Positions 37,201 through 64,000 of a DNA stretch of 64,000 bases are shown one piece after another. Each line of letters starts with the position of its first letter. Within the stretch, counting starts at the first letter, position 1. Location: positions 31,310,001 through 31,374,000 of the forward strand of contig NW_025963780.1 of the NCBI RefSeq assembly GCF_023055435.1, read 5' to 3'. Source of the DNA: Haliotis rufescens. Lineage: Eukaryota. Both the position numbers and the translations under genes were made by a program. Under the pieces are notes generated by a model. The model worked only from the letters and a program-made list of their open reading frames with translations, had not been told where the DNA came from and searched no databases.

Positions 37201-40200
37201 TTTGAAAATATAGTGTGGGCGGTGTGGTTTTTTTTGGTTTTTTTTGTGGGGGATTGTTCAAACTAGTATGTAACCAAATAAACAGTTGTGTACAATCAAT
37301 TTGGGAAAAGGCCTCCCTTCAAGAATGTATTCGTTGATGAGGAAAATACTGGAATACAGTATTTGACTACCGTTTGACTTGGAATATTTAAGGATTTTGT
37401 TGTTTGGGTTTTTTTAACATTGAAAAACAAACGAAACGTGTGTCACACTCTATGATGATGCAGGCGGTACCTGAGAACCAAGACTATTATTTTTTTAAGC
37501 CTTAGTCTATAGAATCATTTTAAAGAAATTAATACGAGGGGGGCTGAAAAGTTTTGCGCCTAACTGGGAAGACATTCCAGCATCTGTGGCAAAAGTGTGT
37601 GGACCTTGGAGGGGATTATGTTGAAAAATATTCAGCAACCAACGCCATCAAAGCTGTCCATCATAGTTTGACTCAGAACTTTTCAGCCACCCCTCAACGT
37701 TTTCCATGTTTGATGACCTGTTACCCTGGTAACCTCTGTAATTCCAGGGTTGTTAGTTGGATTCATCCTGACACTCAGCAGTCTGTGTTTCTTCTCTGCC
37801 CTGCTGGTTTTCTTCCTGGCAGGGTCAAAGGTTACCAAACTCAGAGCTCACCAGAAAAAGAAATTTGAGGAAGATTACAAGGAAGGTATGACATGTATGA
37901 GACATTGAGTCAAGTGTACTGTGTTGAGACATTGAGACAAGTGTCCTGTGTTGAGACACTGAGACAAGTGTCCTGTGTTGACACAGGTGTCCTGTCTTGA
38001 GTCATTGAGACAAGTGTCCTGTGTTGAGACATTGAGACAAGTGTGCTGTGTTGAGACATTGAGACAAGTGTCCTGTGTTAGGGCAAGTGTCCAGTGTTGA
38101 GTCATTGAGACAAGTGTGCTGTGTTGAGACATTGAGACAAGTGTCCTGTGTTGAGACATTGAGACAAGTGTCCTGTGTTGAGACATTGAGACAAGTGTCC
38201 TGTGTTGAGGCAAGTGTCCTGTGTTGAGACATTAAGACAAGTGTCCCGTGTTGAGTCATTGAGACAAGTGTCCTGTGTTGAGACATTGAGACAAGTGTCC
38301 TGTATTGAGACATTGAGACAAGTGTTCCGTGTTGAGACATTGAGACAAGTGTCCTGTATTGAGACATTGAGACCAGTGTCCTGTGTTGAGTCATTGAGAC
38401 AAGTGTCCTGTATTGAGACATTGAGAAAAGTGTCCTGTGTTGACACAAGTGTCCTGTCTTGAGACATTGAGGCAAGTGTCCTGTGTTGAGACATTAAGAC
38501 AAGTGTCCCGTGTTGAGTCATTGAGACAAGTGTCCTGTGTTGAGACATTGAGAAAAGTGTCCTGTGTTGACACAAGTGTCCTATCTTGAGTCATTGAGAC
38601 AAGTGTCCTGTATTGAGACATTGAGACAAGTGTCCTATCTTGAGTCATTGAGACAAGTGTCCTGTGTTGAGTCATTGACACAAATGTCCTGTCTTGAGTC
38701 ATTGAAACAAGTGTCCTGTATCGAGACATTGAGACAAGTGTCCTATATTGAGACATTGAGACAAGTGTTCCGTGTTGAGACATTGAGACAAGTGTCCTGT
38801 GTTGAGTCATTGAGACAAGTGTCCTGTATTGAGACATTGAGACAAGTGTCCTGTATTGAGACATTGAGACAAGTGTCCCGTGTTGAGACATTGAGACAAG
38901 TGTCCTGTATTGAGACATTGAGACCAGTGTCCTGTGTTGAGTCATTGAGACAAGTGTCCTGTATTGAGACATTGAGAAAAGTGTCCTGTCTTGAGACATT
39001 GAGGCAAGTGTCCTGTGTTGAGACATTAAGACAAGTGTCCCGTGTTGAGTCATTGAGACAAGTTTCCTGTGTTGAGACATTGAGGAAAGTGTCCTGTGTT
39101 GACACAAGTGTCCTATCTTGAGTCATTGAGACAAGTGTCCTGTATTGAGACATTGAGACAAGTGTCCTATCTTGAGTCATTGAGACAAGTGTCCTGTGTT
39201 GAGTCATTGACACAAATGTCCTGTCTTGAGTCATTGAGACAAGTGTCCTGTATTGAGACATTGAGACAAGTGTCCTGTATTGAGACATTGAGACAAGTGT
39301 TCCGTGTTGAGACATTGAGACAAGTGTCCTGTGTTGAGTCATTGAGACAAGTGTCCTGTATTGAGACATTGAGATAAGTGTTCTGTGTTGAGACATTGAG
39401 ACAAGTGTCCTGTGTTGAGACATTGAGACAAGTGTCCTGTGTTGAGACATTGAGACAAGTGTCCTGTGTTAGGGCAAGTGTCCAGTGTTGAGACATTGAG
39501 GCAAGTGTCCTGTGTTGAGACATTAAGACAAGTGTCCCTTGTTGAGTCATTGAGACAAGTGTCCTGTGTTGAGACATTGAGACAAGTGTCCTGTGTTGAG
39601 ACATTGAGAAAACTGTCCTGTGTTGACACAAGTGTCCTGTGTTGAGACATTGAGACAAGTGTCCTGTATCGAGACATCGAGACAAGTGTCCTGTGTTGAG
39701 ACATTGAGACAAGTGTCCTGTGTTGAGACATTGAGAAAAATGTCCTGTGTTGACACAAGTGTCCTGTGTTGAGTCATTGAGACAAGTGTCCTGTATTGAG
39801 ACATTGAGACAAGTGTCCTGTGTTGACACAAGTGTCCTGTCTTGAGTCATTGAGACAAGTGTCCTGTGTTGAGTCATTGACACAAATGTCCTATCTTGAG
39901 TCATTGAGACAAGTGTCCTGTATTGAGACATTGAGACAAGTGTTCCGTGTTGAGACATTGAGACAAGTGTCCTGTGTTGAGTCATTGAGACAAGTGTCCT
40001 GTATTGAGACATTGAGACAAGTGTCCTGTATTGAGACATTGAGACAAGTGTCCTGTGTTGAGACATTGAGACAAGTGTCCTGTGTTGAGTCATTGAGACA
40101 AGTGTCCTGTGTTGAGTCATTGAGACAAGTGTCCTGTATTGAGACATTGAGACAAGTGTCCTGTGTTGAGTCATTGAGATAAGTGTCCTGTGTTGAGATA

Positions 40201-43200
40201 AGTGTCCTGTGTTGAGATAAGTGTCCTGTGTTGAGTCATTGAGATAAGTGTCCTGTCTTGAGACATATGTTCTGTGTTGAGATAAGTGTCCTGTATTGAG
40301 ATAAGTGTCCTGTCTTGAGACATATGTTCTGTGTTGAGATAAGTGTCCTGTGTTGAGATAAGTGTCCTGTCTTGAGATAAGTGTCCTGTCTTGAGACATA
40401 TGTTCTGTGTTGAGATAAGTGTCCTGTGTTGAGATAAGTGTCCTGTGTTGAGATAAGTGTCCTGTGTTGAGATAAGTGTCCTGTCTTGAGACATATGTTC
40501 TGTGTTGAGATAAGTGTCCTGTGTTGAGATAAGTGTCCTGTATTGAGACATATGTTCTGTGTTGAGATAAGTGTCCTGTCTTGAGACATATGTTCTGTGT
40601 TGAGATAAGTGTCCTGTGTTGAGATAAGTGTCCTGTGTTGAGACATGTGTCATGTGTTACAGGTGGTCAGCGGAACTGGCTGCAGGTGATGTGTAACGGT
40701 GGTGTAGCCTCACTGTTTGCTATCCTGTACCTGCTCGAGGTTGGCTGTGCGGAGAAGACATTTGACTTCTCCAGAAGATACTCCTCAACGTGGTGGGCTG
40801 CCAGTGTACTAGGATCACTGGCTTGTTGTTGTGGGGACACATTTGCTTCTGAAGTCGGAACAGTGTTTGGTCATTCAAAACCATGGCTTGTGACCAACTT
40901 CCAGAGGGTGCCAAGAGGTAAGTGGTAAGGACATATGGTTTCCATGGTTACAGGAGGCTTTAGAAGGCATGTGTCCATTGTGATTTCAGATTTTCAGTCT
41001 TGCAGAGTGTTTCAAAATTAAGCTGCTTTTTGATAGTTTGGGTACTGTACATTCAAATTAATGCGAGTACTGACCACTAACTTCAAATTTCATAATGAAT
41101 CATCAGCTAGTTTAAGATCTAATCAGCGAAGGACAACTTTAAGACTGTAGACTTAGAATTCCATGATAACGTAAAGGGTCATAGCAATTCGATTGAATAA
41201 TACTGTAACCGTGAAGATCCATGCTTGCCGTAAGAGGTGACTATGCATGTCGTAAGAGGCAACTAACGGGATCAGGTTGTCAGTCTTGTGGTTTATGCAT
41301 GACATCCTATCCCTACTGCGTGGATTGATGCTCATGATATCAATCACTAGATTGTCTGGTCCAGACTTGATTATGTACAGACCCCAATCTTGTAGCTGGA
41401 ATATTGTCGAGTATGATGTTAAACAACAAACAAACAAACAAACAAACAAACAAACAAAGAATAATACTGAATGCCTTTTGCCACTGAAGTGATGTCTCCA
41501 AGTGTGATCTAACTTGAAGGACATCAAGAATAGGAAATTCAATGTAAGCTGTTTATGCAAATGAGATAAGTCAGGTCAACCAACAGATGATTGTGCATGG
41601 GTCCAAGTTTTGTCACGTACATGAGCATGTTGATCGATTCATCATGACAACTGTACATTACATTTCACCATGCGGGTGAGCAGTGTTTTCCTTGTAATTT
41701 GAGATTATCTGATATGGTTTCCAAGGACAAAGATACTGTCCTATTAGTAGAAAACCAACCTGTAGGTCCCATGACCAAATCATTGAAACAAAGGTTTGAA
41801 AGTGTTTTTGAGTTTCCTGATGTATACTGAACAATTTTGACTTGGGCTGCCTGGTTGAAAATCCCGGGCATTTTGGGGAAGGGTCAACAAAGGTCAAACA
41901 GGGGTCAAAATTCAAAATTGTGTCGATATGCATATCAAATGACTCGTCCAGTCATAAGGAACAACTGCCTATATACATGTGTTAAACTGACATAACTGCC
42001 CCATCAACTTGTTTTAAACTGACACAACTGCCTATGAACTTGTGTTAAACTGACATAACTGCCTCATGAACTTGTGTTAAGCTGACATAACTGCCTCATC
42101 AAATTGTGTTAAACTGACATAACTGCCTCATTAACTTGTGTTGAACTGACATAACGTCCTCATCAACTTGTGTTAAACTGACACAACTGCCTATGAACTT
42201 GTGTTAAACTGACATAACTGCCTCATCACCTTGTGTTAAACTGACATAACGTCCTCATCAACTTGTGTTAAACTGACATAACTGCCTCATGAACTTGTGT
42301 TAAACTGACACAACTGCCTATGAACTTGTGTTAAACTGTCATAACTGCCTCATCAACGTGTGTTAAACTGACACAACTGCCTATGAACTTGTGTTAAACT
42401 GACATAACTGCCTCATCAACATGTGTTAAACTGACATAACTGCCCCATCAACTTGTGTTAAACTGACACAACTGCCTATGAACTTGTGTTAAACTGTCAT
42501 AACTGCCCCATCAACTTGTGTTAATCTGACACAACTGCCAATGAACTTGTGTTAAACTGTCATAACTGCCTCATGAACTTGTGTTAAGCTGACATAACTG
42601 CCTCATCAAATTGTGTTCAACTGACATAACTGCCTCATTAACTTGTGTTGAACTGACATAACGTCCTCATCAACTTGTGTTAACCTGACATAACTGCCTC
42701 ATCAACATGTGTTAAACTGACATAACTGCCTCATCAAATTGTGTTAATCTGACACAACTGCCAATGAACTTGTGTTAAACTGTCATAACTGCCTCATGAA
42801 CTTGTGTTAAGCTGACATAACTGCCTCATCAAATTGTGTTCAACTGACATAACTGCCTCATTAACTTGTGTAGAACTGACATAACGTCCTCATCAACTTG
42901 TGTTAACCTGACATAACTGCCTCATCAACTTGTGTTGAACTGACATAACTGCCCCATGAACTTGTGTTAAACTGACATAACTGCTGCATGAACATGTGTT
43001 GAACTGACACCTGACACAATGCTCGGTGAGAAGCACTCAGTCCAGAACTCAACTGCTTTGTTTATTTGGATACTTGTTGTTTATGTAATTATGTCCGGCA
43101 TGTCTACTGTCCCTAACGTGACAATAAACAGCAATATGTCCGGATAATCATGATAATAATGCTCTATTTTTTTAATGAAAGCAGTAATTTGATGTTACTT

Positions 43201-50022: not shown

Positions 50023-51277
50023 AAAGACATTGACATTCTTATGAGATCCACCCATGGCCATCTGCATGACCTGCTAACCACACCAACTATCCTATCAACT
50101 TCTACTCGTATCAACCTATAGGTACCATCCAGGCAGACGCTGTATTCCCTGTACCACGAGGGCGATCAATGTGGCTGAGAGTATGTGAGGGTAATAAATA
50201 TGATAACGCAGGCCATTAAGATTTTGTATCTACACTTATCACGAAGCATCTTAAATTTAGGTCTATTCACAATTTAAAATCAATATGCCCATCCCGCCCA
50301 TTAGCAACGACACCATTGCGTTGATTATGTATGTAATATAATAGATTTGTGACAGAAACAAGCGTTTGCAGAGATAGGATAAGTGTATCGAGTTGTATGG
50401 TCCGGAGTTTCTATTGTGCCGCATGCAATTGTGCAAATAAGTTTGATCAATTAAAAAAAATAGAAAATCTCTTCAGTTATGTGGAAATATTTTATCTTCA
50501 CAGTTGTTGGTTGTGGAGCACATAACGGAGTGTTCGGTATGTTAGCAACGGAAACAACAGATAGAAACAGATCAATCATCTCAGTCCATTAGCAGAGAGG
50601 CGGTTGAGGTATTACCAGTCATTTACAAACTGAGCAGTGTTAATTCATTGATTTAGTTGTAATATATAGTTTAAAAGCAATTGGTCGGCACTTACATGAC
50701 AGAAGAAATGACAGCGCTGGAGCAACTGGGAGAACCTGTGTTAGCCACGGTCTCTTGCAGGTAGAATCTGAGTGTTTTTCTGGTGTGACCTCGGTCAATG
50801 CTGGGGACATTGTATCTCTTCTGAAAGTGTTCCTGGTGTTGGCTTCCGCCTTGGATGAAGACCGAATTTCTCTTGAAGGTGTTGCTTGGCATGAGACTGA
50901 ATATCGTCTTTTGTTGATGGAACTGTTTTGAAGGTCCCTCTGAACCTACTTCTGGTGTGGATCTCCGTCTTTGGGTTGAGAAAAGACTCACCCTACTGTG
51001 TGTATTGCAGATTTACAGTCCACTGTGGACGCCATTGCTCGGAAGGAGACCTCCGCCTGGCTATACTGACGCTGTGGTGGCCAACATCGGCAATAAACAC
51101 CTGTGTTATGTGCTGCATATAGGACTCTCGAACCTTGTAGAATAGACAGCTGTAAAACAAGTACCTGTATCATACGCTTACACATTGCGTTCATATAGGA
51201 CATTGAATCTGGATCATCCACAACAACATATCACGCCCTAATTGTTTAAAAATTCTGATTTCGATTTTGATGAAAAC

Positions 51278-52411
51278 ATGCAGAGTCTTCTATTCAACTA
51301 TGCTGCTTTGATGTTGTCCGTGGTGTTTTTGTTGAGATGTTGCTGCTGTGAACCGGACCCTGAGAGACGGCGACAGCAACGACTGAAGCAGGATCTCCTG
51401 TACAACTACTCCACCACGGTGTCGCCCAAAGGGATGGCAGGTCGGGTCATGGTCTCTGTGTCTTTCGCTCTCATAGCTGTGATAGCCGTGGAAGAAGCCA
51501 ATCAGATATTCCGCGTAAGTGGCGCTCTGACTATGTCTTGGACGGATCTGTGGTTGACATGGGACAGGAGCAACGGTATCGAAGACCTTGAATTTGAACC
51601 TGAGGAGATATGGACCCCAAATTTTGTGATTGCAAACGGTGTAGGTAGCAAGATTTCCTCTTTGTCCGCAAGTATGCCAATCTCCGTTCACCCTTCTGGC
51701 ACGGCAATGATGTTCATGATAAATGAATTTGAGACAATTTGTAATTTGGATGTGGTACGTTATCCCTATGATGAACAGGTGTGTCGCATAACGGTTATCA
51801 GTTTGTTAAACTCCTCAGATTTTGGACTGGGAAATCAAGAATATACCAACATCTTTTCTACATACTTTACTGGTAGCAGTGAATGGGAGTTGGTTAACAA
51901 AACCTTTAGCGTTAAACGAGTCGCTGATCGTATTCCGTACGTTGACCTCGAATTCCGACTACGGCGTCACAGCACCTTCTACACCCTAAGCGTCATCTTT
52001 CCAATGTGTCTTCTCTCCTTCCTCAACGCCTGTGTATTCCTGCTGCCCGCGGCCTCAGGGGAGAAGGTCTCCTTCCTCGTCTCCATCTTCGTGTCCGAAG
52101 CAGTGTTCCTCAACTACATCAATGACGCTATCCCCAAGTCCGGCAATGCCTCTCGCCTCACCATCTATCTGGTTCTGCTTCTGTCACAGAGCGCTCTGGC
52201 TCTGCTCGCCACTCTCCTGGTCATAAACACTCACCATCGACAGGGGGCGTTGCTTTGCCGCCTCCGTAAGAAGATCGCAGTTCAAAGCTCAAGCCCATTT
52301 GAGAGAGGCGATGACATCAAGAACGATGAAGTAGCAGACAGACTCGATAAAATTATGTTTGTCCTGTTTGTGTTGATGGCCGCACTCTCAATACTTGTGT
52401 TTCGTATATAG
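51278..52411 (+). CDS. Intronless Cys-loop ligand-gated ion channel subunit (divergent nAChR-like, non-alpha), copy 1, 377 aa
   Basis: AAAC-ATG start, signal peptide, LLYNY..P, WTD..LTW, IWTPN, Cys-loop CNLDVVRYPYDEQVC, SSEWEL, M1-M4 with GEK before M2, short M3-M4 loop. Confidence 0.93.
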   Translation: MQSLLFNYAALMLSVVFLLRCCCCEPDPERRRQQRLKQDLLYNYSTTVSPKGMAGRVMVSVSFALIAVIAVEEANQIFRVSGALTMSWTDLWLTWDRSNGIEDLEFEPEEIWTPNFVIANGVGSKISSLSASMPISVHPSGTAMMFMINEFETICNLDVVRYPYDEQVCRITVISLLNSSDFGLGNQEYTNIFSTYFTGSSEWELVNKTFSVKRVADRIPYVDLEFRLRRHSTFYTLSVIFPMCLLSFLNACVFLLPAASGEKVSFLVSIFVSEAVFLNYINDAIPKSGNASRLTIYLVLLLSQSALALLATLLVINTHHRQGALLCRLRKKIAVQSSSPFERGDDIKNDEVADRLDKIMFVLFVLMAALSILVFRI

Positions 52412-52502
52412 CATAACATACAAGTCACTGTGGTAACATGATAAACGTTTGGTTTTTAACATTTCATTATACAATTGCTGGTGGCCAGATTTTAATAATA
52501 AT

Positions 52503-52959
52503 ATTTCTGAATTTTTTGTCCCTTTGAACACTAATGTGATTGACAAGATTCAGAAAAAAACATGGCAAATATGCAGACCCCGCTTTCCAAATGTAACGCT
52601 TGCATCTCGAGTATCAAGTTGTCCGACTCCCCATTGTTCTCGGTGCCTTAGATTTGGAACATCCCGATTATTGTACCGACATTGGGAGAGTACACGGGTT
52701 TGCTACCAAGAATACAACCCTTCTAACAATCTGGGTAATGCAGAAGGCTGCAGTGTTTGGGAGTCTTCACATTCTCCGAAAAGTTCTTGGTGGGTTTCTT
52801 TAGGGAGCGCTTCCTGGGAGGAGTCACATTCGCTGTCTGGGCTGCGTGTAGAGGGACAAGGGCCCTGAGCTGGTGATGAGCCTAACCAGTCTCTCTGTGC
52901 CAGGATCACCCTCTTTGCTGCTTTTATTCTTTTAATCTGTAAATGATAATAATAATAAT
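52503..52959 (+). mobile_element. 5'-truncated R4/Dong-type (restriction-like endonuclease, RLE) non-LTR retrotransposon fragment
   Basis: Degenerate translation VP..TNVIDKIQKK.GKYAD.AF.M*RL..YQVVRLPIVLGAL...MQKAAVFGSLHILRKVL resembles the RLE C-terminus; (TAA)n at both ends. Confidence 0.75.
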
Positions 52960-53436
52960 GCCCAAATGACAACTTTTGGTACTTTACGTGATGTAAATAC
53001 TTTGTAAAATATGCTTACATTAATACGATGTTATGACGAAGACCATTGTGAACACGACACTAAAAGCCACGTATGCTTTAAAACTGTTTGAACTCGATTG
53101 CTGCACGTGTTCCAAGTACTCTGAATAACAACGTGTGTTCGTGTGTAGTGTATATGTATTCAGTATCAGATATGTCGTCTCAGTTTGATTGAGTGTCTAG
53201 AAGTTGTTGTTTTTTTAAAATTTTGTAATATTGTGACTTGCTGGCCATCCACTATTGTCAGTATTTTCAACATAGTATATCATTTCACATTACACTTGAA
53301 CAATTTGTAATTTGACATTTCTCTTAAGCAAGGTAGTAAATACTTTCTGTACTGCCTTTTCTTTTAAAGAGGTGTTCTTTTGCCACAAGGAATGGATTTA
53401 TTAGTAAGTATTGCGATAAGCCAAAGAGCAATATTC

Positions 53437-54645
53437 ACACGGTCAGTGCAGAAGTTAGTGTTGTCAGTGGGTACAGAACCTCACGTCACACAATAACTGG
53501 CGAATATAATGTTGTCATAGGTACAGAGCCTCACGTCACACAATGAGTGGAGACGATTGTGTTGTGAGTTGGTATAGAACCTCACGTCACAGAGTCAGTG
53601 CAGAAGATAGACGTGTTGTCAGTGGGTAAAGAACCTCACGTCACACAATCAGTGGCGAAAACAGTGTTGTCGGTGGGTATAGAACCTCACGTCACACAGT
53701 CAGTGGAGAAGATAGTGTTGTCAGTGGGTATAGAACCTCATATCACACAGTCAGTGGAGAATATAGTGTTGTGTGTGGGTATAGAACCTCACGTCACACA
53801 GTCAGTGGAGAAGACAGTGTTGTCAGTGGGTATAGAACCTCATATCACACAGTCAGTGGAGAATATACTGTTGTGAGTGGGTATAGAACCTCACGTCACA
53901 CAGTCAGTGGAGAAGACAGTGTTGTCAGTGGGTATAGAACCTCATATCACACAGTCAGTGGAGAAGATAGTGTTGTGAGTGGGTATAGAACCTCACGTCA
54001 CAGAGTCAGTGCAGAAGATAGTGTTGTGAGTGGGTATAGAACCTCATATCACACAGTCAGTGGAGAAGATAGTGTTGTCAGTGGGTATAGAACCTCACGT
54101 CACACAGTCAGTGCAGAAGATAGTGTTGTCAGTGGGTATAGAACCTCATATCACACAGTCAGTGGAGAAGATAGTGTTGTTCGTGGGTATAGAACCTCAT
54201 ATCACACAGTCAGTGGAGAAGACAGTGTTGTCAGTGGGTATAGAACCTCACGTCACACAGTCAGTGGAGAAGATAGTGTTGTCAGTGGGTATAGAACCTC
54301 ACGTCACACAGTCAGTGGAGAAGACAGTGTTGTCAGTGGGTATGGAAGCTCACGTCACACAGTCAGTGGAGAACATAGTGTTGGCAGTGGGTATAGAACC
54401 TCACGTCACACAGTCCGTGGAGAAGATAATGTTGTCAGTGGGTATAGAACCTCATGCCACACAATCAGTGGAGAAGATAGTGTTGTCATTAGGTATAGAA
54501 CCTCACGTCACACAATCAGTGGAGAGGATAGTGTTGTCATTAGGTAAAGAACCACATGTCACACAGTCAGTGGAGAGGATAATGTTGTCATTAGGTATAG
54601 AACCACATGTCACACAGTGGAGAAGATCGTGTTGTCAGTTGGTAT
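53437..54645. repeat. 51-bp minisatellite
   Basis: agtcagtggagaagatagtgttgtcagtgggtatagaacctcacgtcacac. Confidence 0.95.
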
Positions 54646-54796
54646 AGATACAAAGAACTGTTACAGAAGTACAATCATTTGATCGTCTGTTCTTTAACTA
54701 CTATCTAAGGGCAATCCCGAAGTTAGATTTCTTCTTGATACGTATAAATTCATACAACGATCTTACTGTTAGCAGTTTGGCTTCATATTTAAACAA

Positions 54797-54913
54797 AGTG
54801 GTAAACGTCTGAGACCTGCACCACTTCGGGGTTTTCCTTTACATGAAGCTGACACGTCGTGATATAACTGGAATACTGTTCAGACCGACGTTAAGCCCAA
54901 CTCACTCACTCAT
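54797..54913 (+). mobile_element. SINE family 2, 3' fragment
   Basis: aagtggtaaacgtctgagacctgc...cccaactcactcactc. Confidence 0.78.
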
Positions 54914-55692
54914 TCCATGGCGTATAATGATCCATACACAGGTAATAATGCATGATAAGTTCCATACATACCATGTCGATGACACAGGTGAAGCATCTGT
55001 TTGCTACTGCACCCAAACCATCATGGTGCCACTTTGGTAGCATAATTATTTTTTTACATCGAAATTTATCGTTACATCAATTATTTCTGTACTTTTTCGA
55101 ACTTTCGATTTCTTAAACTTGGTATACTATGAAAATAATCGAAATGAAGAATAAGGAATCGAAATTTAAAAACAACAACTATACCACCAAAAGTGGCAAC
55201 GTAAGGCTTTCGTACAACTGTGCAGACGAGTACGTGACACCGCGAGATTACTTCAGTTGAATAAATTGTAATGCAAACTCCGGAGTTAATGGCACATGGG
55301 TCCAAGTCTCAGACCTATGCAGAGAAATTATCTATGACTTGAGCGTATCGTCTATTAACTTCTCTCTCTAATAGCACACGTCGATCACGCGATCACTTAA
55401 CACAAAAACGTGTTTGCATTACAATCAGATTGATGTAGACATACAGAACCTCTACCGCTAGAGAACAGTGTCTGTTTAATACTTGAATCCCTTTCATTTC
55501 TACCACGTTGTATCAAGATGGAGTTACATATGATAAGCCAATATGCGTACTCGTTATGTATAATTCCGGACTCGTTGCCATGGTTTCTTTGTTGTAAGCG
55601 TAGGTGTTTGGGCCGATACAGCTGTCGTTGTCAGGGAAAGGCTTAGGTGCGTCACTGATGTATCTACACTTTTCACTGACACGTGTCATGAT

Positions 55693-55965
55693 TTGTTTGT
55701 TTATTTGTTTGTTGTTTAACGCCGCACTCAGCAATATTACAGCTATATGACGGCATTCTGTAAATAATCGAGTCTGGACCAGACAATCCAGTGATTGATA
55801 TCATGAGCATCGATCCACGTAATTGGGATACGATGACATGCATCAACCAAGTCAGCGAGCCTGACCACCCGATCCCGTTAGTCGCCTCGTACGACAAGCA
55901 TAGTCGCCTTTTAAGGCAAGCATAGGTTGCTGGAGACCTATTCTACACCGGATCTTCACGGGTCG
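55693..55965 (-). mobile_element. SINE family 3
   Basis: Near full-length; flanks acacgtgtcatga / acatgtgtcatga resemble a TSD. Confidence 0.82.
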
Positions 55966-56589
55966 ACATGTGTCATGAAAGAATGCTATATGCATTTGGG
56001 GGCATTAAACTCACCCTAAAAGTAATGAACAGTCCCTCTTTTCCTTTTTTTAATTAAAGCATAAAGTTTAAATATATGATCCGATAAGAACTTTTCCAAA
56101 AATACACATAAGGGAAACACCGACATCGGATAATGGAGACATAATGAGAATCGGGGCTCGTTGATTCCACTTCAAGAACCCATATGTTCGAGTGTCATGG
56201 CTGATATAATATTTCTCGATAATTTGCATAATGACCTATAGTTGCATCAGTTTCACGTGCATAATATTTGTTAATTCTGTCTAATGTGACCAAACGCTCT
56301 ATAATACACCAGTTACAATATAGTTTTATAATAGCAACAGCACAAGGTTTTCACTGAATATTTGAACGGTTTAGCAGAATGGATATTAATCAGTTTATCG
56401 TACTGGTACGTTAAGCACTGATGTTCCTTTACGTGAAAATATGATACAAACAAAATTGCTCATTGAAAGGACAAGGAATTTTTCATCAGTTTGTTTAAAA
56501 TATTTCAAAATATTATATCGCTTAATAATTAGAAAATACATATTCAGTGTAAAACTAGATAGTGTAGACATTTGAGTGATACGTGACGT

Positions 56590-56727
56590 GTCTTGTTTGT
56601 TGATGTTGTTGTTGCACTTTGTTGATGTTGTTTGTTTCTCTTTGTTGGTGTTGTTGTTGTTGCACTTTGTTGTTGTTGTTTGTTTCTCTTGTTGATGTCG
56701 TTGTTGCACTTTGTTGTTGTTGATGTT
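56590..56727. repeat. (GTT)n-rich compound repeat
   Basis: Direct reading; source of the Q/T/N-rich spurious ORFs. Confidence 0.85.
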
Positions 56728-56835
56728 TCAGCTCCACGACGATGACCTGTAACGAATCGGTTCTGGAACAGACTAAAAAGGTCATTGATAGTGTGATCGA
56801 CGATCCTCGCCGTGGGGATACAATACCAAGCTTTC

Positions 56836-57087
56836 AGACCCGTTAAGATCCGGAGTAGAGTAGGTCCCCAGGAACCCATGCTTGCCGTAAAAAGCGACTG
56901 TCTGTTGTAAGTGGTGACAAGGGTTACGGGTGGTCAGGCTCGCTGTCATCAATCCCAATCCCAATCGATGCTTATGGTGTCAATCACTGGATTGTCTGGT
57001 CCAAACTCGATTATTTACAGACTGCCGTCATATAGCTGTAATATTGCTGAGTGCGGCGTTTAACAACAAATCCAACAAAGAAACAAA
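56836..57087 (+). mobile_element. SINE family 3
   Basis: gacccgttaagatccgg...; flanks aaagctttcag. Confidence 0.78.
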
Positions 57088-58467
57088 GCTTTCAGCCAAG
57101 TCGCGGGGGTAGTTCATACCCGAGCGCGTGAATTTACGCAAGTGATAAACATTGAGGACATGCGTGCTTTGGGCTTTCGTCCAACATAAGCTGACACATC
57201 ATAGCGTAATTATATCACATATTCCACTCTGCTGCACGTGGTAACTGACATCAAATGGCCTCACATTGCTGCCAACGTGTCGCCTACACGTGCTGTATAA
57301 CTCCGAACAATGATGTTTGTCAATTAGAGAAATCTTACATGCCAGACAGACTTGGAAGAGTCCAGTATATGGTGTTAACCCTAGAATAGGGTGTACATGT
57401 TCCTTACCATGACATCCCAGCACAAACAATTGGAAAATAAACACCATGTCTTTGAGGAACATGGAACGATGCTAAACAAACCTGACAATGGACCTGTGGA
57501 TCGGCAGTAACCATGCGTCATTATCAACAGCAGGGGTGGAGGGAGTGCTGGCTGTCCAGTGAGCTGTGTATGCTTGACAGTCTCTGTGGGACAAAGAATC
57601 TGTGATTAATGTGTCAGCAGTCGAAGACAGATAATCGTATACAATCAATTCACTACTGGGAACCGCTACAGTGTATGTGGAGAGGATGTATGGATTCCAA
57701 CTTCTTCATGAACTGTAAAGGCGACATTTCGGGATAGATTCATGACATCAATCACTGGATTGTCTGGTCCAGATTCGATTATTTACAGGCGCTGTCATAT
57801 AGCTGGAATATTGCTGAGTGCTGCATTAAACAACAAACAAACAAAACGAGTCAATACACCAGCTGACACCGACAGTTAATATCACCATCCATAAGGCTGT
57901 TTCGGTGTAAGTATACAACTGTTTAGATAATTGAGTCTCACCTACATGTTGTAGGCTTGTTTACAGTATTTTTAATTCCCTCATTACATATGCTGATTTC
58001 TTCATCAAAAGAAGTATCCTCCCCCCCCCCCCCCTTCATCCATATTTTTATATTGATGGTGATTGTTGCTATATACAGGACGGTATTGGATGTGATATGC
58101 ACTGTACATTATGAACACTCTATTTTTTTCTAATTGAACACTGCTATATTTTTCTAATTGAATAAATGAGAGAAAAAACTTTTTGAGTATGGTTTTATTG
58201 TTCAGCCAAACTGTGACTGCCCTGTCATTGTAAGCAAGTTGGTGTTGATATCGTTTTACGCTGCAGTCAGCAATTTTCCACCAACCACATGACACAGGCT
58301 GCAGTCTTAACAATAGACAGATATTTAGTCCCAGAAATAAACTTATCTTATTTAAAAATATGTTTCTACAAAATTTAAAAAAATAATCCAAATGGAGCCC
58401 AGAACAAGTCTTCTTACAGCTGCGGCAATCTAGACTTGCCAGATCATTCTAGACTTGAGTTTGACTC

Positions 58468-58890
58468 CTTTTTTAGCTCACTGGGTCCGAAGTACCAAGG
58501 TGAGTTTATGCCATACCATGGCGTCCGTCATTCGTCTGTCGTCCGTCCGTTTACAATATATTCAAACGACTTCTTCTTCTGAACCACCAATCGGAAATTA
58601 ACGAAATTTGACTGGAGCCAACCCTAGGTGGTGGGGATTCAAAATTGTACAAATGGGTGGGCTGACCCCCAAGGGGCTGAGGGACAGGGCCAAATTGGGG
58701 TAATTTGGCGATATTGCTTTAAACAACTGGAACAACTCTTATCTGGAACTAAGAAATAGATATCAACAATTTACAGTTGAACTAATGGAAGGGCTGATCA
58801 ACCCTCAAGGGATGGAGTAAAATAGGGGTAATTTGGCGATATTGCTTTGAACGACTTCTTCTCTGGAACTAAGAGACAGATATCAACCTT
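58468..58890 (+). mobile_element. Helentron-associated (HINE/DINE-1-like) non-autonomous element fragment
   Basis: tttttagctcac...gtgagtt hairpin, then a (CGTC/TGTC) microsatellite, then internal repeats ggggtaatttggcgatattgcttt...ctggaactaaga. Confidence 0.6.
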
Positions 58891-60399
58891 TGGTAAACAC
58901 TATCTTGGATGTAGCCGTCCGAAGTGTTCTGATAGATCAAGCCTGAATCAGTGCACATTATCTGTTCCGATCGTTTTTTTTAAAGAAATGCATTATCATT
59001 TTAATCCGATACTAGCATTAAAAATATTTGCCCATCCATTATATTGTATTGCTTTCTGCTGTGTCGACTGGAAGCACACAACGCTGTAGACATTGGGAGC
59101 CAGTGTTAAATTAACGGACGTCATGTATCCAGCTAAAGGCATGACGAGTCTCCACAATAACGTATCGACTGTCGAAGGGTGTCAATTATGTCGCTATAAT
59201 CAGAGCAAGTGTAATTACACGTGTAGCGACAGATAATAAGATCTATTGACGGACAGAGTATGCACTGATATGAGACCCGACCAGATCGGCATTCAGGCTG
59301 CGTCATCGTATGTGAGGGTAATAAATATGATCACGCAGGCCATTAAGATTTTGTATCTACCATTATCACGAAACAATTTAGGTCTATTCACAATTTAAAA
59401 TCAATATGCCCATCCCACCCATTAGCAACGACACCATTGCGTTGATTATGTTTGTAATATAATCGATTTGTGACAGAAACAAGCGTTTGCAGAGATAGGA
59501 TAAGTGTATCGAGTTGTATGGTCCGGAGTTTCTATTGTACCGCATGCAAATTGTGCAAATAAGTTTGATCAATTAAAAAATTTAGAAAATCTCTTCATTT
59601 ATGTGGAAATATTATATCTTCATAGTTGTTGGTTGTGGAGCACATAACGGAGTGTTCGGTATATTAGCAACGGAAACAACAGATAGAAACAGATCAATCA
59701 TCTCAGTCCATTAGGAGATAGGCGGTTGAGGTATTACCAGTCATTTACAAACTGAGCAATGTTAATTCATTGATTTAGTTGTAATATATAGTTTAAAAGC
59801 AATTGGTCGGCACTTACATGACAGAAGTAATGACAGCGCTGGAGCAACTGGGAGAACCTGTGTTAGCCACGGTCTCTTGCAGGTAGAATCTGAGTGTTTT
59901 TCTGGTGTGACCTCGGTCAATGCTGGGGACATAGTATCTCTTCTGAAAGTGTTCCTGGTGTTGGCTTCCGCCTTGGATTAAGACCGAATTTCTCTTGAAG
60001 GTGTTGCTTGGCATGAGACTGAATATCGTCTTTTGTTGATGGAACTGTTTTGAAGGTCCCTCTGAACGTCCTTCCGGTGTGGATCTCCGTCTTTGGGTTG
60101 AGAAAAGACTCACCCTGCTGTGTGAATGGCAGATTTACATTCCACTGTGGACGCCATTGCTCGGAAGGAGACCTCAGCCTGGCTATACTGACGCTGTGGT
60201 GGCCAACATCGGCAATAGACACCTGTGTTATGTACTGCATATAGGACTCTCGAACCTTGAAGAATAGACAACTGTTGAACAAGTACCCGTATCATACGCT
60301 TACACATTGCGTTCATGTAGGGCATTGAATCTGGATCATCCACACCAACATATCACGCCCTAATTGTTTAAAAATTCTGATTTCGATTTTGATGAAAAC

Positions 60400-61530
60400 A
60401 TGCAGAGTGTTCTATTCAACTATGCTGCTTTGATGTTGTCCGTGGTGTTTTTGTTGAGATGTTGCTGCTGTGAACCGGACCCTGAGAGACGGCAACAGCA
60501 ACGACTGAAGCAGGATCTCCTGTACAACTACTCCACCACGGTGTCGCCCCAAGGGACGGCAAGTAGGGTCATGGTCTCTGTGTCATTCGCTGTCATAGCT
60601 GTGATAGCCGTGGAAGAAGCCAATCAGATGTTCCGCTTAAGTGGCGCTCTGACTATGTCTTGGACGGATCCTTGGTTGACATGGGACAGGAGCAATGATA
60701 TCGAAAAGCTTGAATTTGAACCTGAGGAGATATGGACCCCAAATTTCGTGATTGCAAACGGTGTAGGTAGCAAGATTTCCTCTTTGTCCGCAAGTATGCC
60801 AATCTCCGTTTACCCTTCTGGCACGGCAAGGATGTTCATGATAAATGAATTTGAGACAATTTGTAATTTGGATGTGGTACGGTATCCCTATGATGAACAG
60901 GTGTGTCGCATAACGGTTATCAGTTTGTTTAACTTAGATTTTGGACTGGGAAATCAAGAATATACCAACATTTTTTCTACATACTTTACTGGTAGCAGTG
61001 AATGGGAGTTGGTTAACAAAACCATTAGCGTTAAACGAGTCGCTGATCGTATTCCGTACGTTGACCTCGAATTCCGACTACGGCGTCACAGCATCTTCTA
61101 CACCCTAAGCGTCATCTTTCCAATGTGTCTTCTCTCCTTCCTCAACGCCTGTGTATTCCTGCTGCCCGCGGCCTCAGGGGAGAAGGTCTCCTTCCTCGTC
61201 TCCATCTTCGTGTCCGAAGCAGTGTTCCTCAACTACATTAATGACGCTATCCCCAAGTCCGGCAATGCCTCTCGCCTCACTATCTATCTGGTTCTGCTTC
61301 TGTCACAGAGCGCCCTGGCTCTGCTCGCCACTCTCCTGGTCATAAACACTCACCATCGACAGGGGGCGTTGCTTTGTCGCCTCCGTAAGAAGATCGCAGT
61401 TCAAAGCACAAGTCCATTGGAGAGAGGCGATGACATCAAGAACGATGAAGCAGCAGACAGACTCGATAAAATTATGTTTGTCCTGTTTGTGTTGATGGCC
61501 GCACTCTCAATACTTGTGTTTCGTATATAG
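60400..61530 (+). CDS. Intronless Cys-loop ligand-gated ion channel subunit (divergent nAChR-like, non-alpha), copy 2, 376 aa
   Basis: Paralog of copy 1 with about 19 amino-acid substitutions and one codon indel; intact ORF. Confidence 0.93.
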   Translation: MQSVLFNYAALMLSVVFLLRCCCCEPDPERRQQQRLKQDLLYNYSTTVSPQGTASRVMVSVSFAVIAVIAVEEANQMFRLSGALTMSWTDPWLTWDRSNDIEKLEFEPEEIWTPNFVIANGVGSKISSLSASMPISVYPSGTARMFMINEFETICNLDVVRYPYDEQVCRITVISLFNLDFGLGNQEYTNIFSTYFTGSSEWELVNKTISVKRVADRIPYVDLEFRLRRHSIFYTLSVIFPMCLLSFLNACVFLLPAASGEKVSFLVSIFVSEAVFLNYINDAIPKSGNASRLTIYLVLLLSQSALALLATLLVINTHHRQGALLCRLRKKIAVQSTSPLERGDDIKNDEAADRLDKIMFVLFVLMAALSILVFRI

Positions 61531-61605
61531 CATACATACAAGTCACTGTGGTAACGTGATAAACGTTTTGTTTTTAACATTTGGTGGCCAGATTTTAATA
61601 ATAAT

Positions 61606-62068
61606 ATGTCTGAATCTTTTGTCCCTTTGGACACTAATGTGATTGACAAGATTCAGAAAAAACATGGCAAATATGCAGACCCCGCTTTCGAAATGTAACG
61701 CTTGCATCTCGAGTATCAAGTTGTCCGACTCCCCATTGTTCTCGGTGCCTTAGATTTGGAACATCCCGATTATTTTACTGACATTGGGAGAGAACACGGG
61801 TTTGCTACCAGGAATACAACCTTTCTGACAATCTGGGTAATGCAGAAAGCTGCAGTGTTGGGGAGTCTTCACATTCTCCGAAAAGTTCTCGGTGGGTTTC
61901 TTTAGGCAGCGCTTCCTGGGAGGAGTCACATTCGCTGTCTGGGGTGCGTGCAGAGGGGGCAAGGGCCCTGAGCTGGTGATGAGCCTAACAAGTCTGTCTG
62001 TGTCAGGATCACCCAAACCCTCTTTGCTGCATTTTTTATTTTAATCTGTAAATGATAATAATAATAAT
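61606..62068 (+). mobile_element. 5'-truncated R4/Dong-type retrotransposon fragment (duplicate)
   Basis: VPLDTNVIDKIQKKHGKYADPAFEM*RLHLEYQVVRLPIVLGAL...MQKAAVLGSLHILRKVL; (TAA)n flanks. Confidence 0.75.
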
Positions 62069-62534
62069 GCCCAAATGACAACTTTTGGTACTTTACGTGA
62101 TGTAAATACTTTGTAAAATATGCTTACATTAATACGATATTATGACGAAGACCATTGTGAACACGACACTAAAAGCCACGTATGCTTTAAAACTGTTTGA
62201 ACTCGATTGCTGCACGTGTTCCAAGTACTCTGAATAACAACGTGTGTTCGTGTGTAGTGTATATGTATTCAGTATCAGATATGTCGTCTCAGTTTGATTG
62301 AGTGTCTAGAAGTTGTTTTTTGTCATATTGTGACTTGCTGGCCATCCACTATTGTCAGTTTTTTCAAAATAGTATATCATTTCACATTACACTTTAACAA
62401 TTTGTAATTTGACATTTCTCTTAAGCAAGGTAGTAAATACTTTCTGTACTGCCTTTTCTTATAACGAGGTGTTCTTTTGCCACAAGGAATGGATTTATTA
62501 GTAAGTATTGCGATAAGCCAAAGAGGCAATATTC

Positions 62535-64000
62535 ACACGGTCAGCGGAGAAGATAGTGTTGTCATAGGTACAGAACCTCACGTCACACAGTCAGTGGAGA
62601 AGATAGTGTTGTCAGTGGGTAAAGAACATCACGTCACACAATCACTGGCGAATATAGTGTTGTCAGTGGGTATAGAACCTCTTCACACAGTCAGTGCAGA
62701 AGATAGTGTTGTCAGTTGGTATAGAACCTCACGTCACACAGTCAGTGGAGAAGATAGTGTTGTCAGTGGGTAAAGAACCGCACGTCACACAGTCAGTGGA
62801 AAAGATACCTTTGTCAGTGGGTATAGAACCTCATGTCACACAATAAGTGGAGAGGAAACCGTTGTCAGTGGGTATAGAACCTCACGTCACACAGTCAGTG
62901 CAGAAGATAGTGTTGTCAGTGGGTATAGAACCTCACGTCACACACTCAGTGCAGAAGATAGTGTTGTGGGTAGGTATAGAAAATCACGTCACACAGTCAG
63001 TGGAGAAGATAGTGTTGTCAGTAGGTATAGAACCTCACGTCACACAGTCAGTGGAGAAGATAGTGTTGTCAGTGGGTATAGAACCTCACGTCACACAGTC
63101 AGTGGAGAAGATAGTGTTGTCAGTGGGTATAGAACCTCACGTCACACAATCAGTGGAGAAGATATTGTTGTCAGTGGGTATAGAACCTCACGTCACACAA
63201 TCAGTGGAGAAGTTAGTGTTGTCATAGGTACAGAACCTCACGTCACACAGTCAGTGGAGAAGATAGTGTTGTCAGTGGGTAAAGAACATCACGTCACACA
63301 ATCACTGGCGAATATAGTGTTGTCAGTGGGTATAGAACCTCTTCACACAGTCAGTGCAGAAGATAGTGTTGTCAGTTGGTATAGAACCGCACGTCACACA
63401 GTCAGTGGAAAAGATACCTTTGTCAGTTGGTATAGAACCTCATGTCACACAATAAGTGGAGAGGAAACCGTTGTCAGTGGGTATAGAACCTCACGTCACA
63501 CAGTCAGTGCAGATGATAGTGTTGTCAGTTGGTATAGAACCACATGTCACACACTCAGTGCAGAAGATAGTGTTGTGGGTAGGTATAGAAAATCACGTCA
63601 CACAGTCAGTGGAGAAGATAGTGTTGTCAGTAGGTATAGAACCTCACGCCACACAGTCAGTGGAGAAGAGAGTTGTCAGTAGGTATAGAACCTCACGTCA
63701 CAGTCAGTGGAGAAGATAGTGTTGTGAGTTGGTATAGAACCTCACGTCACACAATCAGTGGAGGAGATAGTGATGTCAGTCGGTATACAACCTCACGTCA
63801 CACAGTCAGTGCAGATGAAAGTGTTGTCAGTTGGTATAGAACCTCACGTCACACAATCAGTAGAGAAGATAGAGTTATCAGTGGGTATAGAAGCTCACGT
63901 CACACAATCAGTGGAGAAGATAGTGTTGTCAGTGGGTATAGAACCTCACGTCACGAAGTCAGTGCAGATGATAGTGTTGTCAGTGGGTATAGAACCTCAC
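62535..64000. repeat. 51-bp minisatellite (duplicate, longer)
   Basis: Same unit as 53437-54645; runs off the window. Confidence 0.95.

Follow-up and report, generated by a model that had tools for sequence, protein, structure and literature searches.

What kind of receptor is encoded by two neighbouring, intronless genes of an abalone, and what could it respond to? The window analysed here is a stretch of 64,000 nucleotides (nt) from Haliotis rufescens (NCBI RefSeq assembly GCF_023055435.1, contig NW_025963780.1, positions 31,310,001 to 31,374,000 of the forward strand), and positions are those of the window unless another contig is named. An earlier note on this DNA, made from the letters alone, had taken two tandem open reading frames (ORFs) in it for Cys-loop receptors without the acetylcholine (ACh) site and for candidate chemotactile-like sensory receptors. 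We consider it probable, if well short of assured, that the two genes are recently duplicated (synonymous divergence, dS, about 0.05) and functional, that they encode orphan cation-channel subunits of the nicotinic branch, and that they belong to a Haliotis-specific subclade of A, B and C types in which the pore module has been converted. The two genes and the elements discussed first are as follows.

51278..52411, + strand: gene 1 (A type), single-exon coding sequence (CDS) of 377 amino acids (aa) plus stop, from the ORF, Pfam, matches to nicotinic acetylcholine receptor (nAChR) chains and an AlphaFold model
60400..61530, + strand: gene 2 (A' type), single-exon CDS of 376 aa plus stop, from the ORF, Pfam and identity to gene 1
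Gene 1 layout: signal peptide, about aa 1-25; extracellular domain, 26-232; M1-M3, 233-322; M3-M4 loop, 321-355; M4, 356-377
51740..51784, + strand: Cys-loop C155-x13-C169 of gene 1 with its YPYDEQ core, from the alpha7 alignment and the family survey
52046..52135, + strand: M2 pore helix of gene 1, from the alpha7 M2 alignment and the family survey

Two nicotinic-branch subunits and their binding site

Gene 1 and gene 2 are identical at 94% of their amino acids and 97.1% of their coding nucleotides. Both proteins carry the Pfam domains PF02931 (Neur_chan_LBD; E 2e-31, 109 bits, cut-off 26) and PF02932 (Neur_chan_memb; E 5e-12, 47 bits, cut-off 28.1), and Torpedo and human nAChR chains matched both over residues 33-371 with E values of about 1e-31. 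In the PDB sequence search, the best 60 chains listed were all nAChR or 5-HT3A, the Torpedo beta chain being the best match to a solved structure by sequence. Since the Pfam domains and the end-to-end nAChR alignment fall within each ORF, no intron interrupts the coding of the protein, signal peptide through M4. AlphaFold, run on a 37-sequence family alignment, gave a model with a mean predicted local distance difference test score (pLDDT) of 83.8 that comprised an N-terminal helix (2-22), a beta-sandwich and four transmembrane (TM) helices (233-255, 262-284, 293-334 and 345-376). Its closest structures were muscle nAChR and alpha7 (VIA Z 28.8-28.9), with anionic receptors at 25.7 or less, and the ESM Atlas returned generic nAChR-like clusters only. 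The gene structure given in the earlier note, two intact single-exon ORFs with a signal peptide, a C-x13-C loop and four TM helices, was borne out by the Pfam domains, the nAChR alignments and the model, and so was its estimate of a short M3-M4 loop, which measures about 35 aa (about residues 321-355). These data indicated that both proteins are subunits of Cys-loop pentameric ligand-gated channels of the nicotinic branch.

Binding-site residues were read from a HMMER alignment to alpha7. In the window proteins, alpha7 Trp55 and Tyr93 are each replaced by Ala, Trp149 is replaced by Leu, and Tyr188 aligns with a gap, loop C being shorter by two residues. The earlier note had called the aromatic box largely lost, which holds for these four positions; it had overlooked Tyr195, which is retained as the Tyr of "RIPY" and is the one aromatic-box residue in five that is kept. 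The vicinal Cys pair of loop C is gone, as that note had stated, with Ala and Asp at the columns of alpha7 Cys190 and Cys191. The loop E residues are likewise replaced relative to alpha7, and since both they and Trp55 have changed, neither subunit face can supply the canonical site. By this alignment, the canonical ACh site is absent from both proteins. A difference between the two copies lies right after the loop B position, where gene 1 encodes the sequon N178-S-S (51809-51817) and gene 2 (60931-60936) lacks this N-glycosylation sequon through a 3-nt deletion and a Ser-to-Leu change.

The pore carries the signature of the cation-selective type, with the GEK motif, a Glu at -1' and an Asp at 20'. 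In full, M2 of gene 1 reads SGEK with -1' Glu, 9' Val, 13' Val, 16' Asn, 17' Tyr and 20' Asp, the 9' Val standing where Leu is near-universal. Compared with canonical nAChRs (alpha7; muscle beta, delta and epsilon), which are the best matches by sequence (E about 1e-31) and by fold (Z 28.8-28.9), the abalone proteins have the Cys-loop, the GEK ring and the four TM helices in common. They differ in having no aromatic box, no Cys-Cys and no CDS introns, in the 9' Val instead of Leu, and in an intracellular loop of about 35 aa, which is 80-270 aa long in the canonical receptors.

Both window proteins are present letter for letter in NCBI and UniRef (P0022 is gene 1 and P0023 is gene 2), recorded on the same contig as named H. 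rufescens paralogs but themselves listed nameless. The automatic names on their relatives are "unc-29-like" for the Haliotis cracherodii ortholog and "non-alpha-3-like" and "beta-3-like" for the H. rufescens B and C paralogs.

An abalone gene family with a shared pore module

A six-frame search of the whole assembly yielded at least 109 scored single-ORF matches among 327 candidates, and nearly all of the matches were uninterrupted frames of 360-450 aa lying in tandem arrays on many contigs, for example 12 full copies at C594:46.41-46.57 Mb. Paralogs beyond the window, which the earlier note had proposed to count, include two adjacent copies of B type (C2:31382824 and C2:31391879; 71% identity) and a C-type copy 3.46 Mb away (63% identity). 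The A and B types each form a tandem pair with a period of about 9 kb, making a four-gene array in all.

For a family survey, 90 of the 109 genomic loci were taken, 85 of which are intact. Neither the loop-C Cys-Cys nor the loop-A Tyr occurs in any of the intact copies (0/85 each), the loop-B Trp is kept in 21/85 and the loop-D Trp in 13/85. The Cys-loop is kept in 83/85 and the -1' Glu in 81/85; the 9' position is Val in 49/85 and Leu in 32/85. Defective members also occur inside otherwise intact arrays, as 148-aa TM-only fragments and as copies with one or two in-frame stops, so some pseudogenisation takes place within the family. The truncated or stop-containing members are these.

C594:46474980-46475417 and C594:46485048-46485485: L087 and L088
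C445:47467059: L029
C79:31898549: L022

The closest database proteins came from H. cracherodii (93%, 70% and 63% identity) and H. asinina (68-70%); among the matches listed, relatives with at least 60% identity were found only in Haliotis, and the best outside that genus reached no more than 40%. In word-index protein searches, run with a single-protein query and with the 37-sequence family profile, no cephalopod protein was among the 15-16 proteins returned, nor was any chain of a cephalopod chemotactile receptor (CR) among the best 60 of the PDB sequence search. A maximum-likelihood tree of 102 sequences placed the window genes in a 10-member, Haliotis-only clade with a Shimodaira-Hasegawa-like approximate likelihood ratio test (SH-aLRT) value of 100. 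It is nested in a larger clade of 70 members (SH-aLRT 100) that coincides with the 9' Val pore motif; a Bulinus protein and unnamed ENA sequences belong to this larger clade as well. Together with the loss of the ACh site, these results support the earlier proposal that the window genes form a lineage-specific orphan cluster, here placed by sequence within a large intronless abalone family.

Families of this type have been described before. Jiao et al. (2019) reported 64-217 nAChR genes in molluscs, many of which lack introns, stand in tandem, have degenerate principal sites and are expressed in a variety of non-neuronal settings (PMC6896357). The abalone genes resemble that expansion in having a Pfam ligand-binding domain (LBD) and TM domain encoded in one exon, in their tandem arrangement and lineage-specific bursts, and in the degeneration of the principal binding residues. 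The gastropods in that study were Lottia and Aplysia, not Haliotis, and neither a 9' Val pore clade nor a homogenised pore module is part of it. Judged by these shared characters, the window genes are vetigastropod members of the published mollusc/lophotrochozoan nAChR expansion.

The paralogs proved to be alike in one segment of the CDS, which lies at the following places in the two window genes.

51953..52237, + strand: pore-module tract of gene 1 (aa 226-320; CDS nt about 676-960), interpreted as a tract of gene conversion
61072..61356, + strand: pore-module tract of gene 2, from the same comparison

This tract of about 285 nt, from pre-M1 to M3, is 94-100% identical in nucleotides to its counterparts in the C-type gene and in the B-type genes that lie just past the window. 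Among the A, B and C paralogs, dS was 0.7-2.2 in the extracellular part and 0.6-1.4 in the part from the loop to M4, and it was 0.05-0.12 from pre-M1 to M3. A window scan placed sharp borders at CDS nt of about 676 and 960, with 45-nt windows 91-100% identical inside the tract and flanking windows mostly 47-84% identical. When only codons with an unchanged amino acid were counted, differences numbered 5-9 in about 90 inside the tract versus 53-73 in 130-162 outside it (Fisher p 1e-5 to 1e-14). Beyond the coding region, units of the three types failed to align, save for one 60-nt match.

The pattern is found elsewhere in the family. Four paralogs at C68:12776484-12803135 (L031, L032, L035 and L041) have an M1-M3 dS of 0.00 and an extracellular dS of 0.6-1.2; this cluster showed the most extreme pore-module homogenisation that we saw. 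Low divergence of the tract relative to the extracellular part recurs in the C594 array. In the control clusters L036/L040, L064/L067 and L071/L077, the ratio was near 1, so the pattern is no general codon or mutation artefact. Its simplest reading is gene conversion confined to this domain, which would maintain a single pore module in each subclade. A literature search turned up no account of pore-module homogenisation in mollusc nAChR-like genes, and this appears to be the one point so far unreported. The TLR1/TLR6 pair (PMC2077338) is comparable in that a module of shared function is homogenised by conversion between tandem paralogs and the ligand-recognition parts diverge; it belongs to a different protein family and serves as an analogy only.

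Age, selection and surroundings of the two genes

Between gene 1 and gene 2, dS was 0.048 and the nonsynonymous divergence (dN) 0.025, giving a dN/dS ratio (w) of 0.52; w was 0.65 in the extracellular part (16 nonsynonymous and 7 synonymous differences) and 0.12 in M1-M3. Between A and B types, it was 0.14-0.40 extracellularly and 0.04-0.15 in M1-M3. The binding loops alone gave 0.69 for gene 1 versus gene 2 (5 nonsynonymous, 2 synonymous) and 0.14-0.20 at depth. An enrichment of gene 1/gene 2 differences in loops A-F was looked for and is absent, since these loops make up 37% of the domain and hold 6 of the 16 extracellular differences. Positions 138 and 144 in loop E (alpha7 Asn111 and Gln117) differ across gene 1, gene 2 and the H. 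cracherodii orthologue. No positive selection was demonstrated, the extracellular w being below 1 in all comparisons (gene 1/gene 2 and A/B).

The single H. cracherodii orthologue is 95.5% identical to gene 2 and 93.4% identical to gene 1, and private amino acid changes number 13 in gene 1, 6 in gene 2 and 10 in H. cracherodii, an asymmetry that is not significant. By these counts and identities, the duplication is about as old as the split between H. rufescens and H. cracherodii. The ORFs are intact in three Haliotis species. Judged from the substitution pattern, purifying selection acts on both genes, which are functional and whose binding domain evolves fast.

The duplication extends beyond the genes. 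Within the block of about 4.5 kb, the gene is preceded by about 1.1 kb and followed by a high-copy repeat and a minisatellite, and the minisatellite copies match at 87-88%.

50181..54648, + strand: tandem segmental duplication, copy 1, from a blastn match of 93.3% over 4480 nt with an offset of 9127
59308..63738, + strand: tandem segmental duplication, copy 2, from the same blastn match
53435..54648: 51-bp minisatellite downstream of gene 1, 23.8 copies
62533..64000: the 51-bp minisatellite again, following gene 2, with 29 or more copies and continuing past the end of the window

Long ORFs at 53771-54547, 54030-54647 and 62966-63682 were ruled out as genes, being derived from the 51-bp minisatellite. 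About 100 bp past the stop codon of gene 1 lies a very high-copy repeat (52508-52963), whose word depth in DNA contigs is 10^4 to >10^5, compared with about 14-250 for neighbouring sequence. It is probably a short interspersed nuclear element (SINE) or a fragment of another transposable element, and an ORF across it (52449-52868) had no Pfam match. Upstream of gene 1, about 265 bp before its ATG, a polypyrimidine-rich "...tgtgtattgcag" motif at 50990-51015 resembles a splice acceptor, so that gene 1 may have an intron in its 5' untranslated region despite its single-exon CDS. At 38000-40650 on the minus strand, overlapping long ORFs (up to 410 aa) coincide with a strong GC skew (0.20-0.27); against Pfam they gave weak, sub-threshold matches only, and the region is probably a repetitive low-complexity array or an exon.

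Competing explanations and what the family may mean

In the explanation that we favour, the channel would not be gated by ACh through a cation-pi cage, and another ligand, probably uncharged or hydrophobic, would bind at the remodelled subunit interface. The paralogs would probably co-assemble on a shared pore chassis, maintained by gene conversion together with selection for compatible pores. The mode of evolution is mosaic: among old paralogs the pore module has stayed near-identical in nucleotides, and the LBD, the intracellular loop and M4 diverge freely.

Among the sequencing runs listed as matching the stretch, none is on record as RNA. The six best-matching runs (X7-X12) have the appearance of whole-genome DNA from an organism that differs by about 2%; in X7 and X10, coverage was the same over flanks and CDS, and each place had a single contig. 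A run whose RNA status was guessed gave two contigs at a depth of about 3 that lie only inside the CDS (51501-51680 and 52014-52212), and in number and kind their differences agree with gene 2 (8 of 9 and 3 of 3 of those expected). Another run of guessed RNA status gave one contig matching only 51953-52273; this coincides with the span of the shared tract, so its source may be any paralog. These contigs hint at low-level transcription and do not indicate a tissue. More generally, the near identity of the tract among paralogs means that short-read expression and variant calls there are not paralog-specific.

Several points weigh against the favoured explanation. RNA support amounts to two short, low-depth contigs from one run of guessed RNA status. 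The 9' Val might alter gating. The low dS of the tract could in principle reflect constraint at the nucleotide level instead of conversion. Finally, non-alpha subunits of true ACh receptors also have no Cys-Cys, so that an accessory role in ACh-gated heteromers is possible.

A first alternative, unlikely in our view although it is the best placed of the rivals, is a role in contact chemoreception at the periphery, by analogy or homology with the cephalopod CRs; the proteins would then be expressed in the tentacle, epipodium, lip or larval apical organ and be gated by environmental molecules of low solubility. Like the CRs, the abalone proteins are nAChR-derived and intronless, have lost the ACh site and have a cation-type pore; they also occur in tandem, and the binding domain varies over a constant pore module. 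A 2026 preprint, moreover, distinguished 15 mollusc nAChR clades, placed the CRs in a mostly cephalopod clade, described a "CR-like" clade that extends to gastropods and proposed ionotropic chemosensing for divergent clades (PMC13174522). However, intronless genes, tandem arrays and degenerate sites are general to the mollusc expansion and thus no specific pointer to a CR-like role, and in bivalves, members of that expansion have their main expression in gill, gonad and embryos and react to infection and stress (PMC6896357). By fold and identity, octopus CRT1 (9e6b; Z 21.6, 25% identity) and squid CRB1 (8eiz; Z 21.6, 18% identity) are no closer to the window proteins than alpha7 is (Z 28.8, 24% identity), and shared ancestry with CRs beyond the nAChR branch has no support here. 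The extracellular w below 1 and the chance share of differences in loops A-F also speak against this alternative, with no diversifying selection detected in these comparisons.

Alpo4 of Alvinella pompejana (8bx5; Z 25.3, 21% identity) is an orphan nAChR-like protein of an annelid, hence a lophotrochozoan one, without the loop-C Cys-Cys that did not respond to ACh in its own study (PMC10338036). Unlike the abalone proteins, which have lost four of the five residues, Alpo4 has kept its aromatic cage (F103, W159, Y199, Y205 and W65).

More doubtful is a structural or accessory role, implied by the automatic names, in which the window proteins would be non-alpha subunits that join ACh-binding alpha subunits in cholinergic receptors. 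Such a role would agree with the missing Cys-Cys, the conserved pore, the Torpedo beta chain as the best structure match by sequence and the RefSeq names on the H. cracherodii ortholog and the H. rufescens paralogs. Against it stand the replacement of Trp55 and the loop E residues on the complementary face as well, the absence of alphas from the family (0/85), an intracellular loop of only about 35 aa, and an identity of only 92-95.5% to orthologues in a closely related species.

About equally doubtful is a role as non-neuronal sensors or modulators in epithelia, for stress, immune or developmental signalling. In bivalves, intron-poor nAChR-like genes are expressed in gill, gonad and early embryo, and the expanded genes respond to temperature, salinity, Vibrio and OsHV-1 (PMC6896357), but these data come from clades other than that of the abalone genes.

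Decaying, functionless retrocopies, to which the weak RNA signal and the commoner occurrence of unexpressed genes among intron-poor copies (PMC6896357) could point, are very improbable and largely refuted by the selection data (w 0.04-0.15 in M1-M3 and <0.4 extracellularly at depth), with ORFs intact in three Haliotis species and at 85 of 90 loci.

We therefore retain the reading of the two genes as functional orphan subunits with a converted pore module. By themselves they add little: RefSeq has them already, and the mollusc expansion of genes without introns, in tandem and with degenerate sites has been published. The family as a whole, at least 85 intact single-exon genes without the alpha-type site, raises the question of which ligands the orphan channels of a grazing gastropod detect. 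The chemical cues for settlement and feeding in H. rufescens are classic objects of study. A bolder picture, unlikely in our view, is that nAChR-like subunits make up a system of ionotropic chemoreceptors in abalone and gastropods at large, either convergent with the CRs or sister to them. Each gene cluster would have its own pore chassis, held uniform by gene conversion so that subunits could mix, and rapidly diverging LBDs for food, settlement or conspecific cues. Beyond the abalone, the identity of the pore module among otherwise saturated paralogs suggests a design rule for expanding channel families: a shared chassis with variable sensors.

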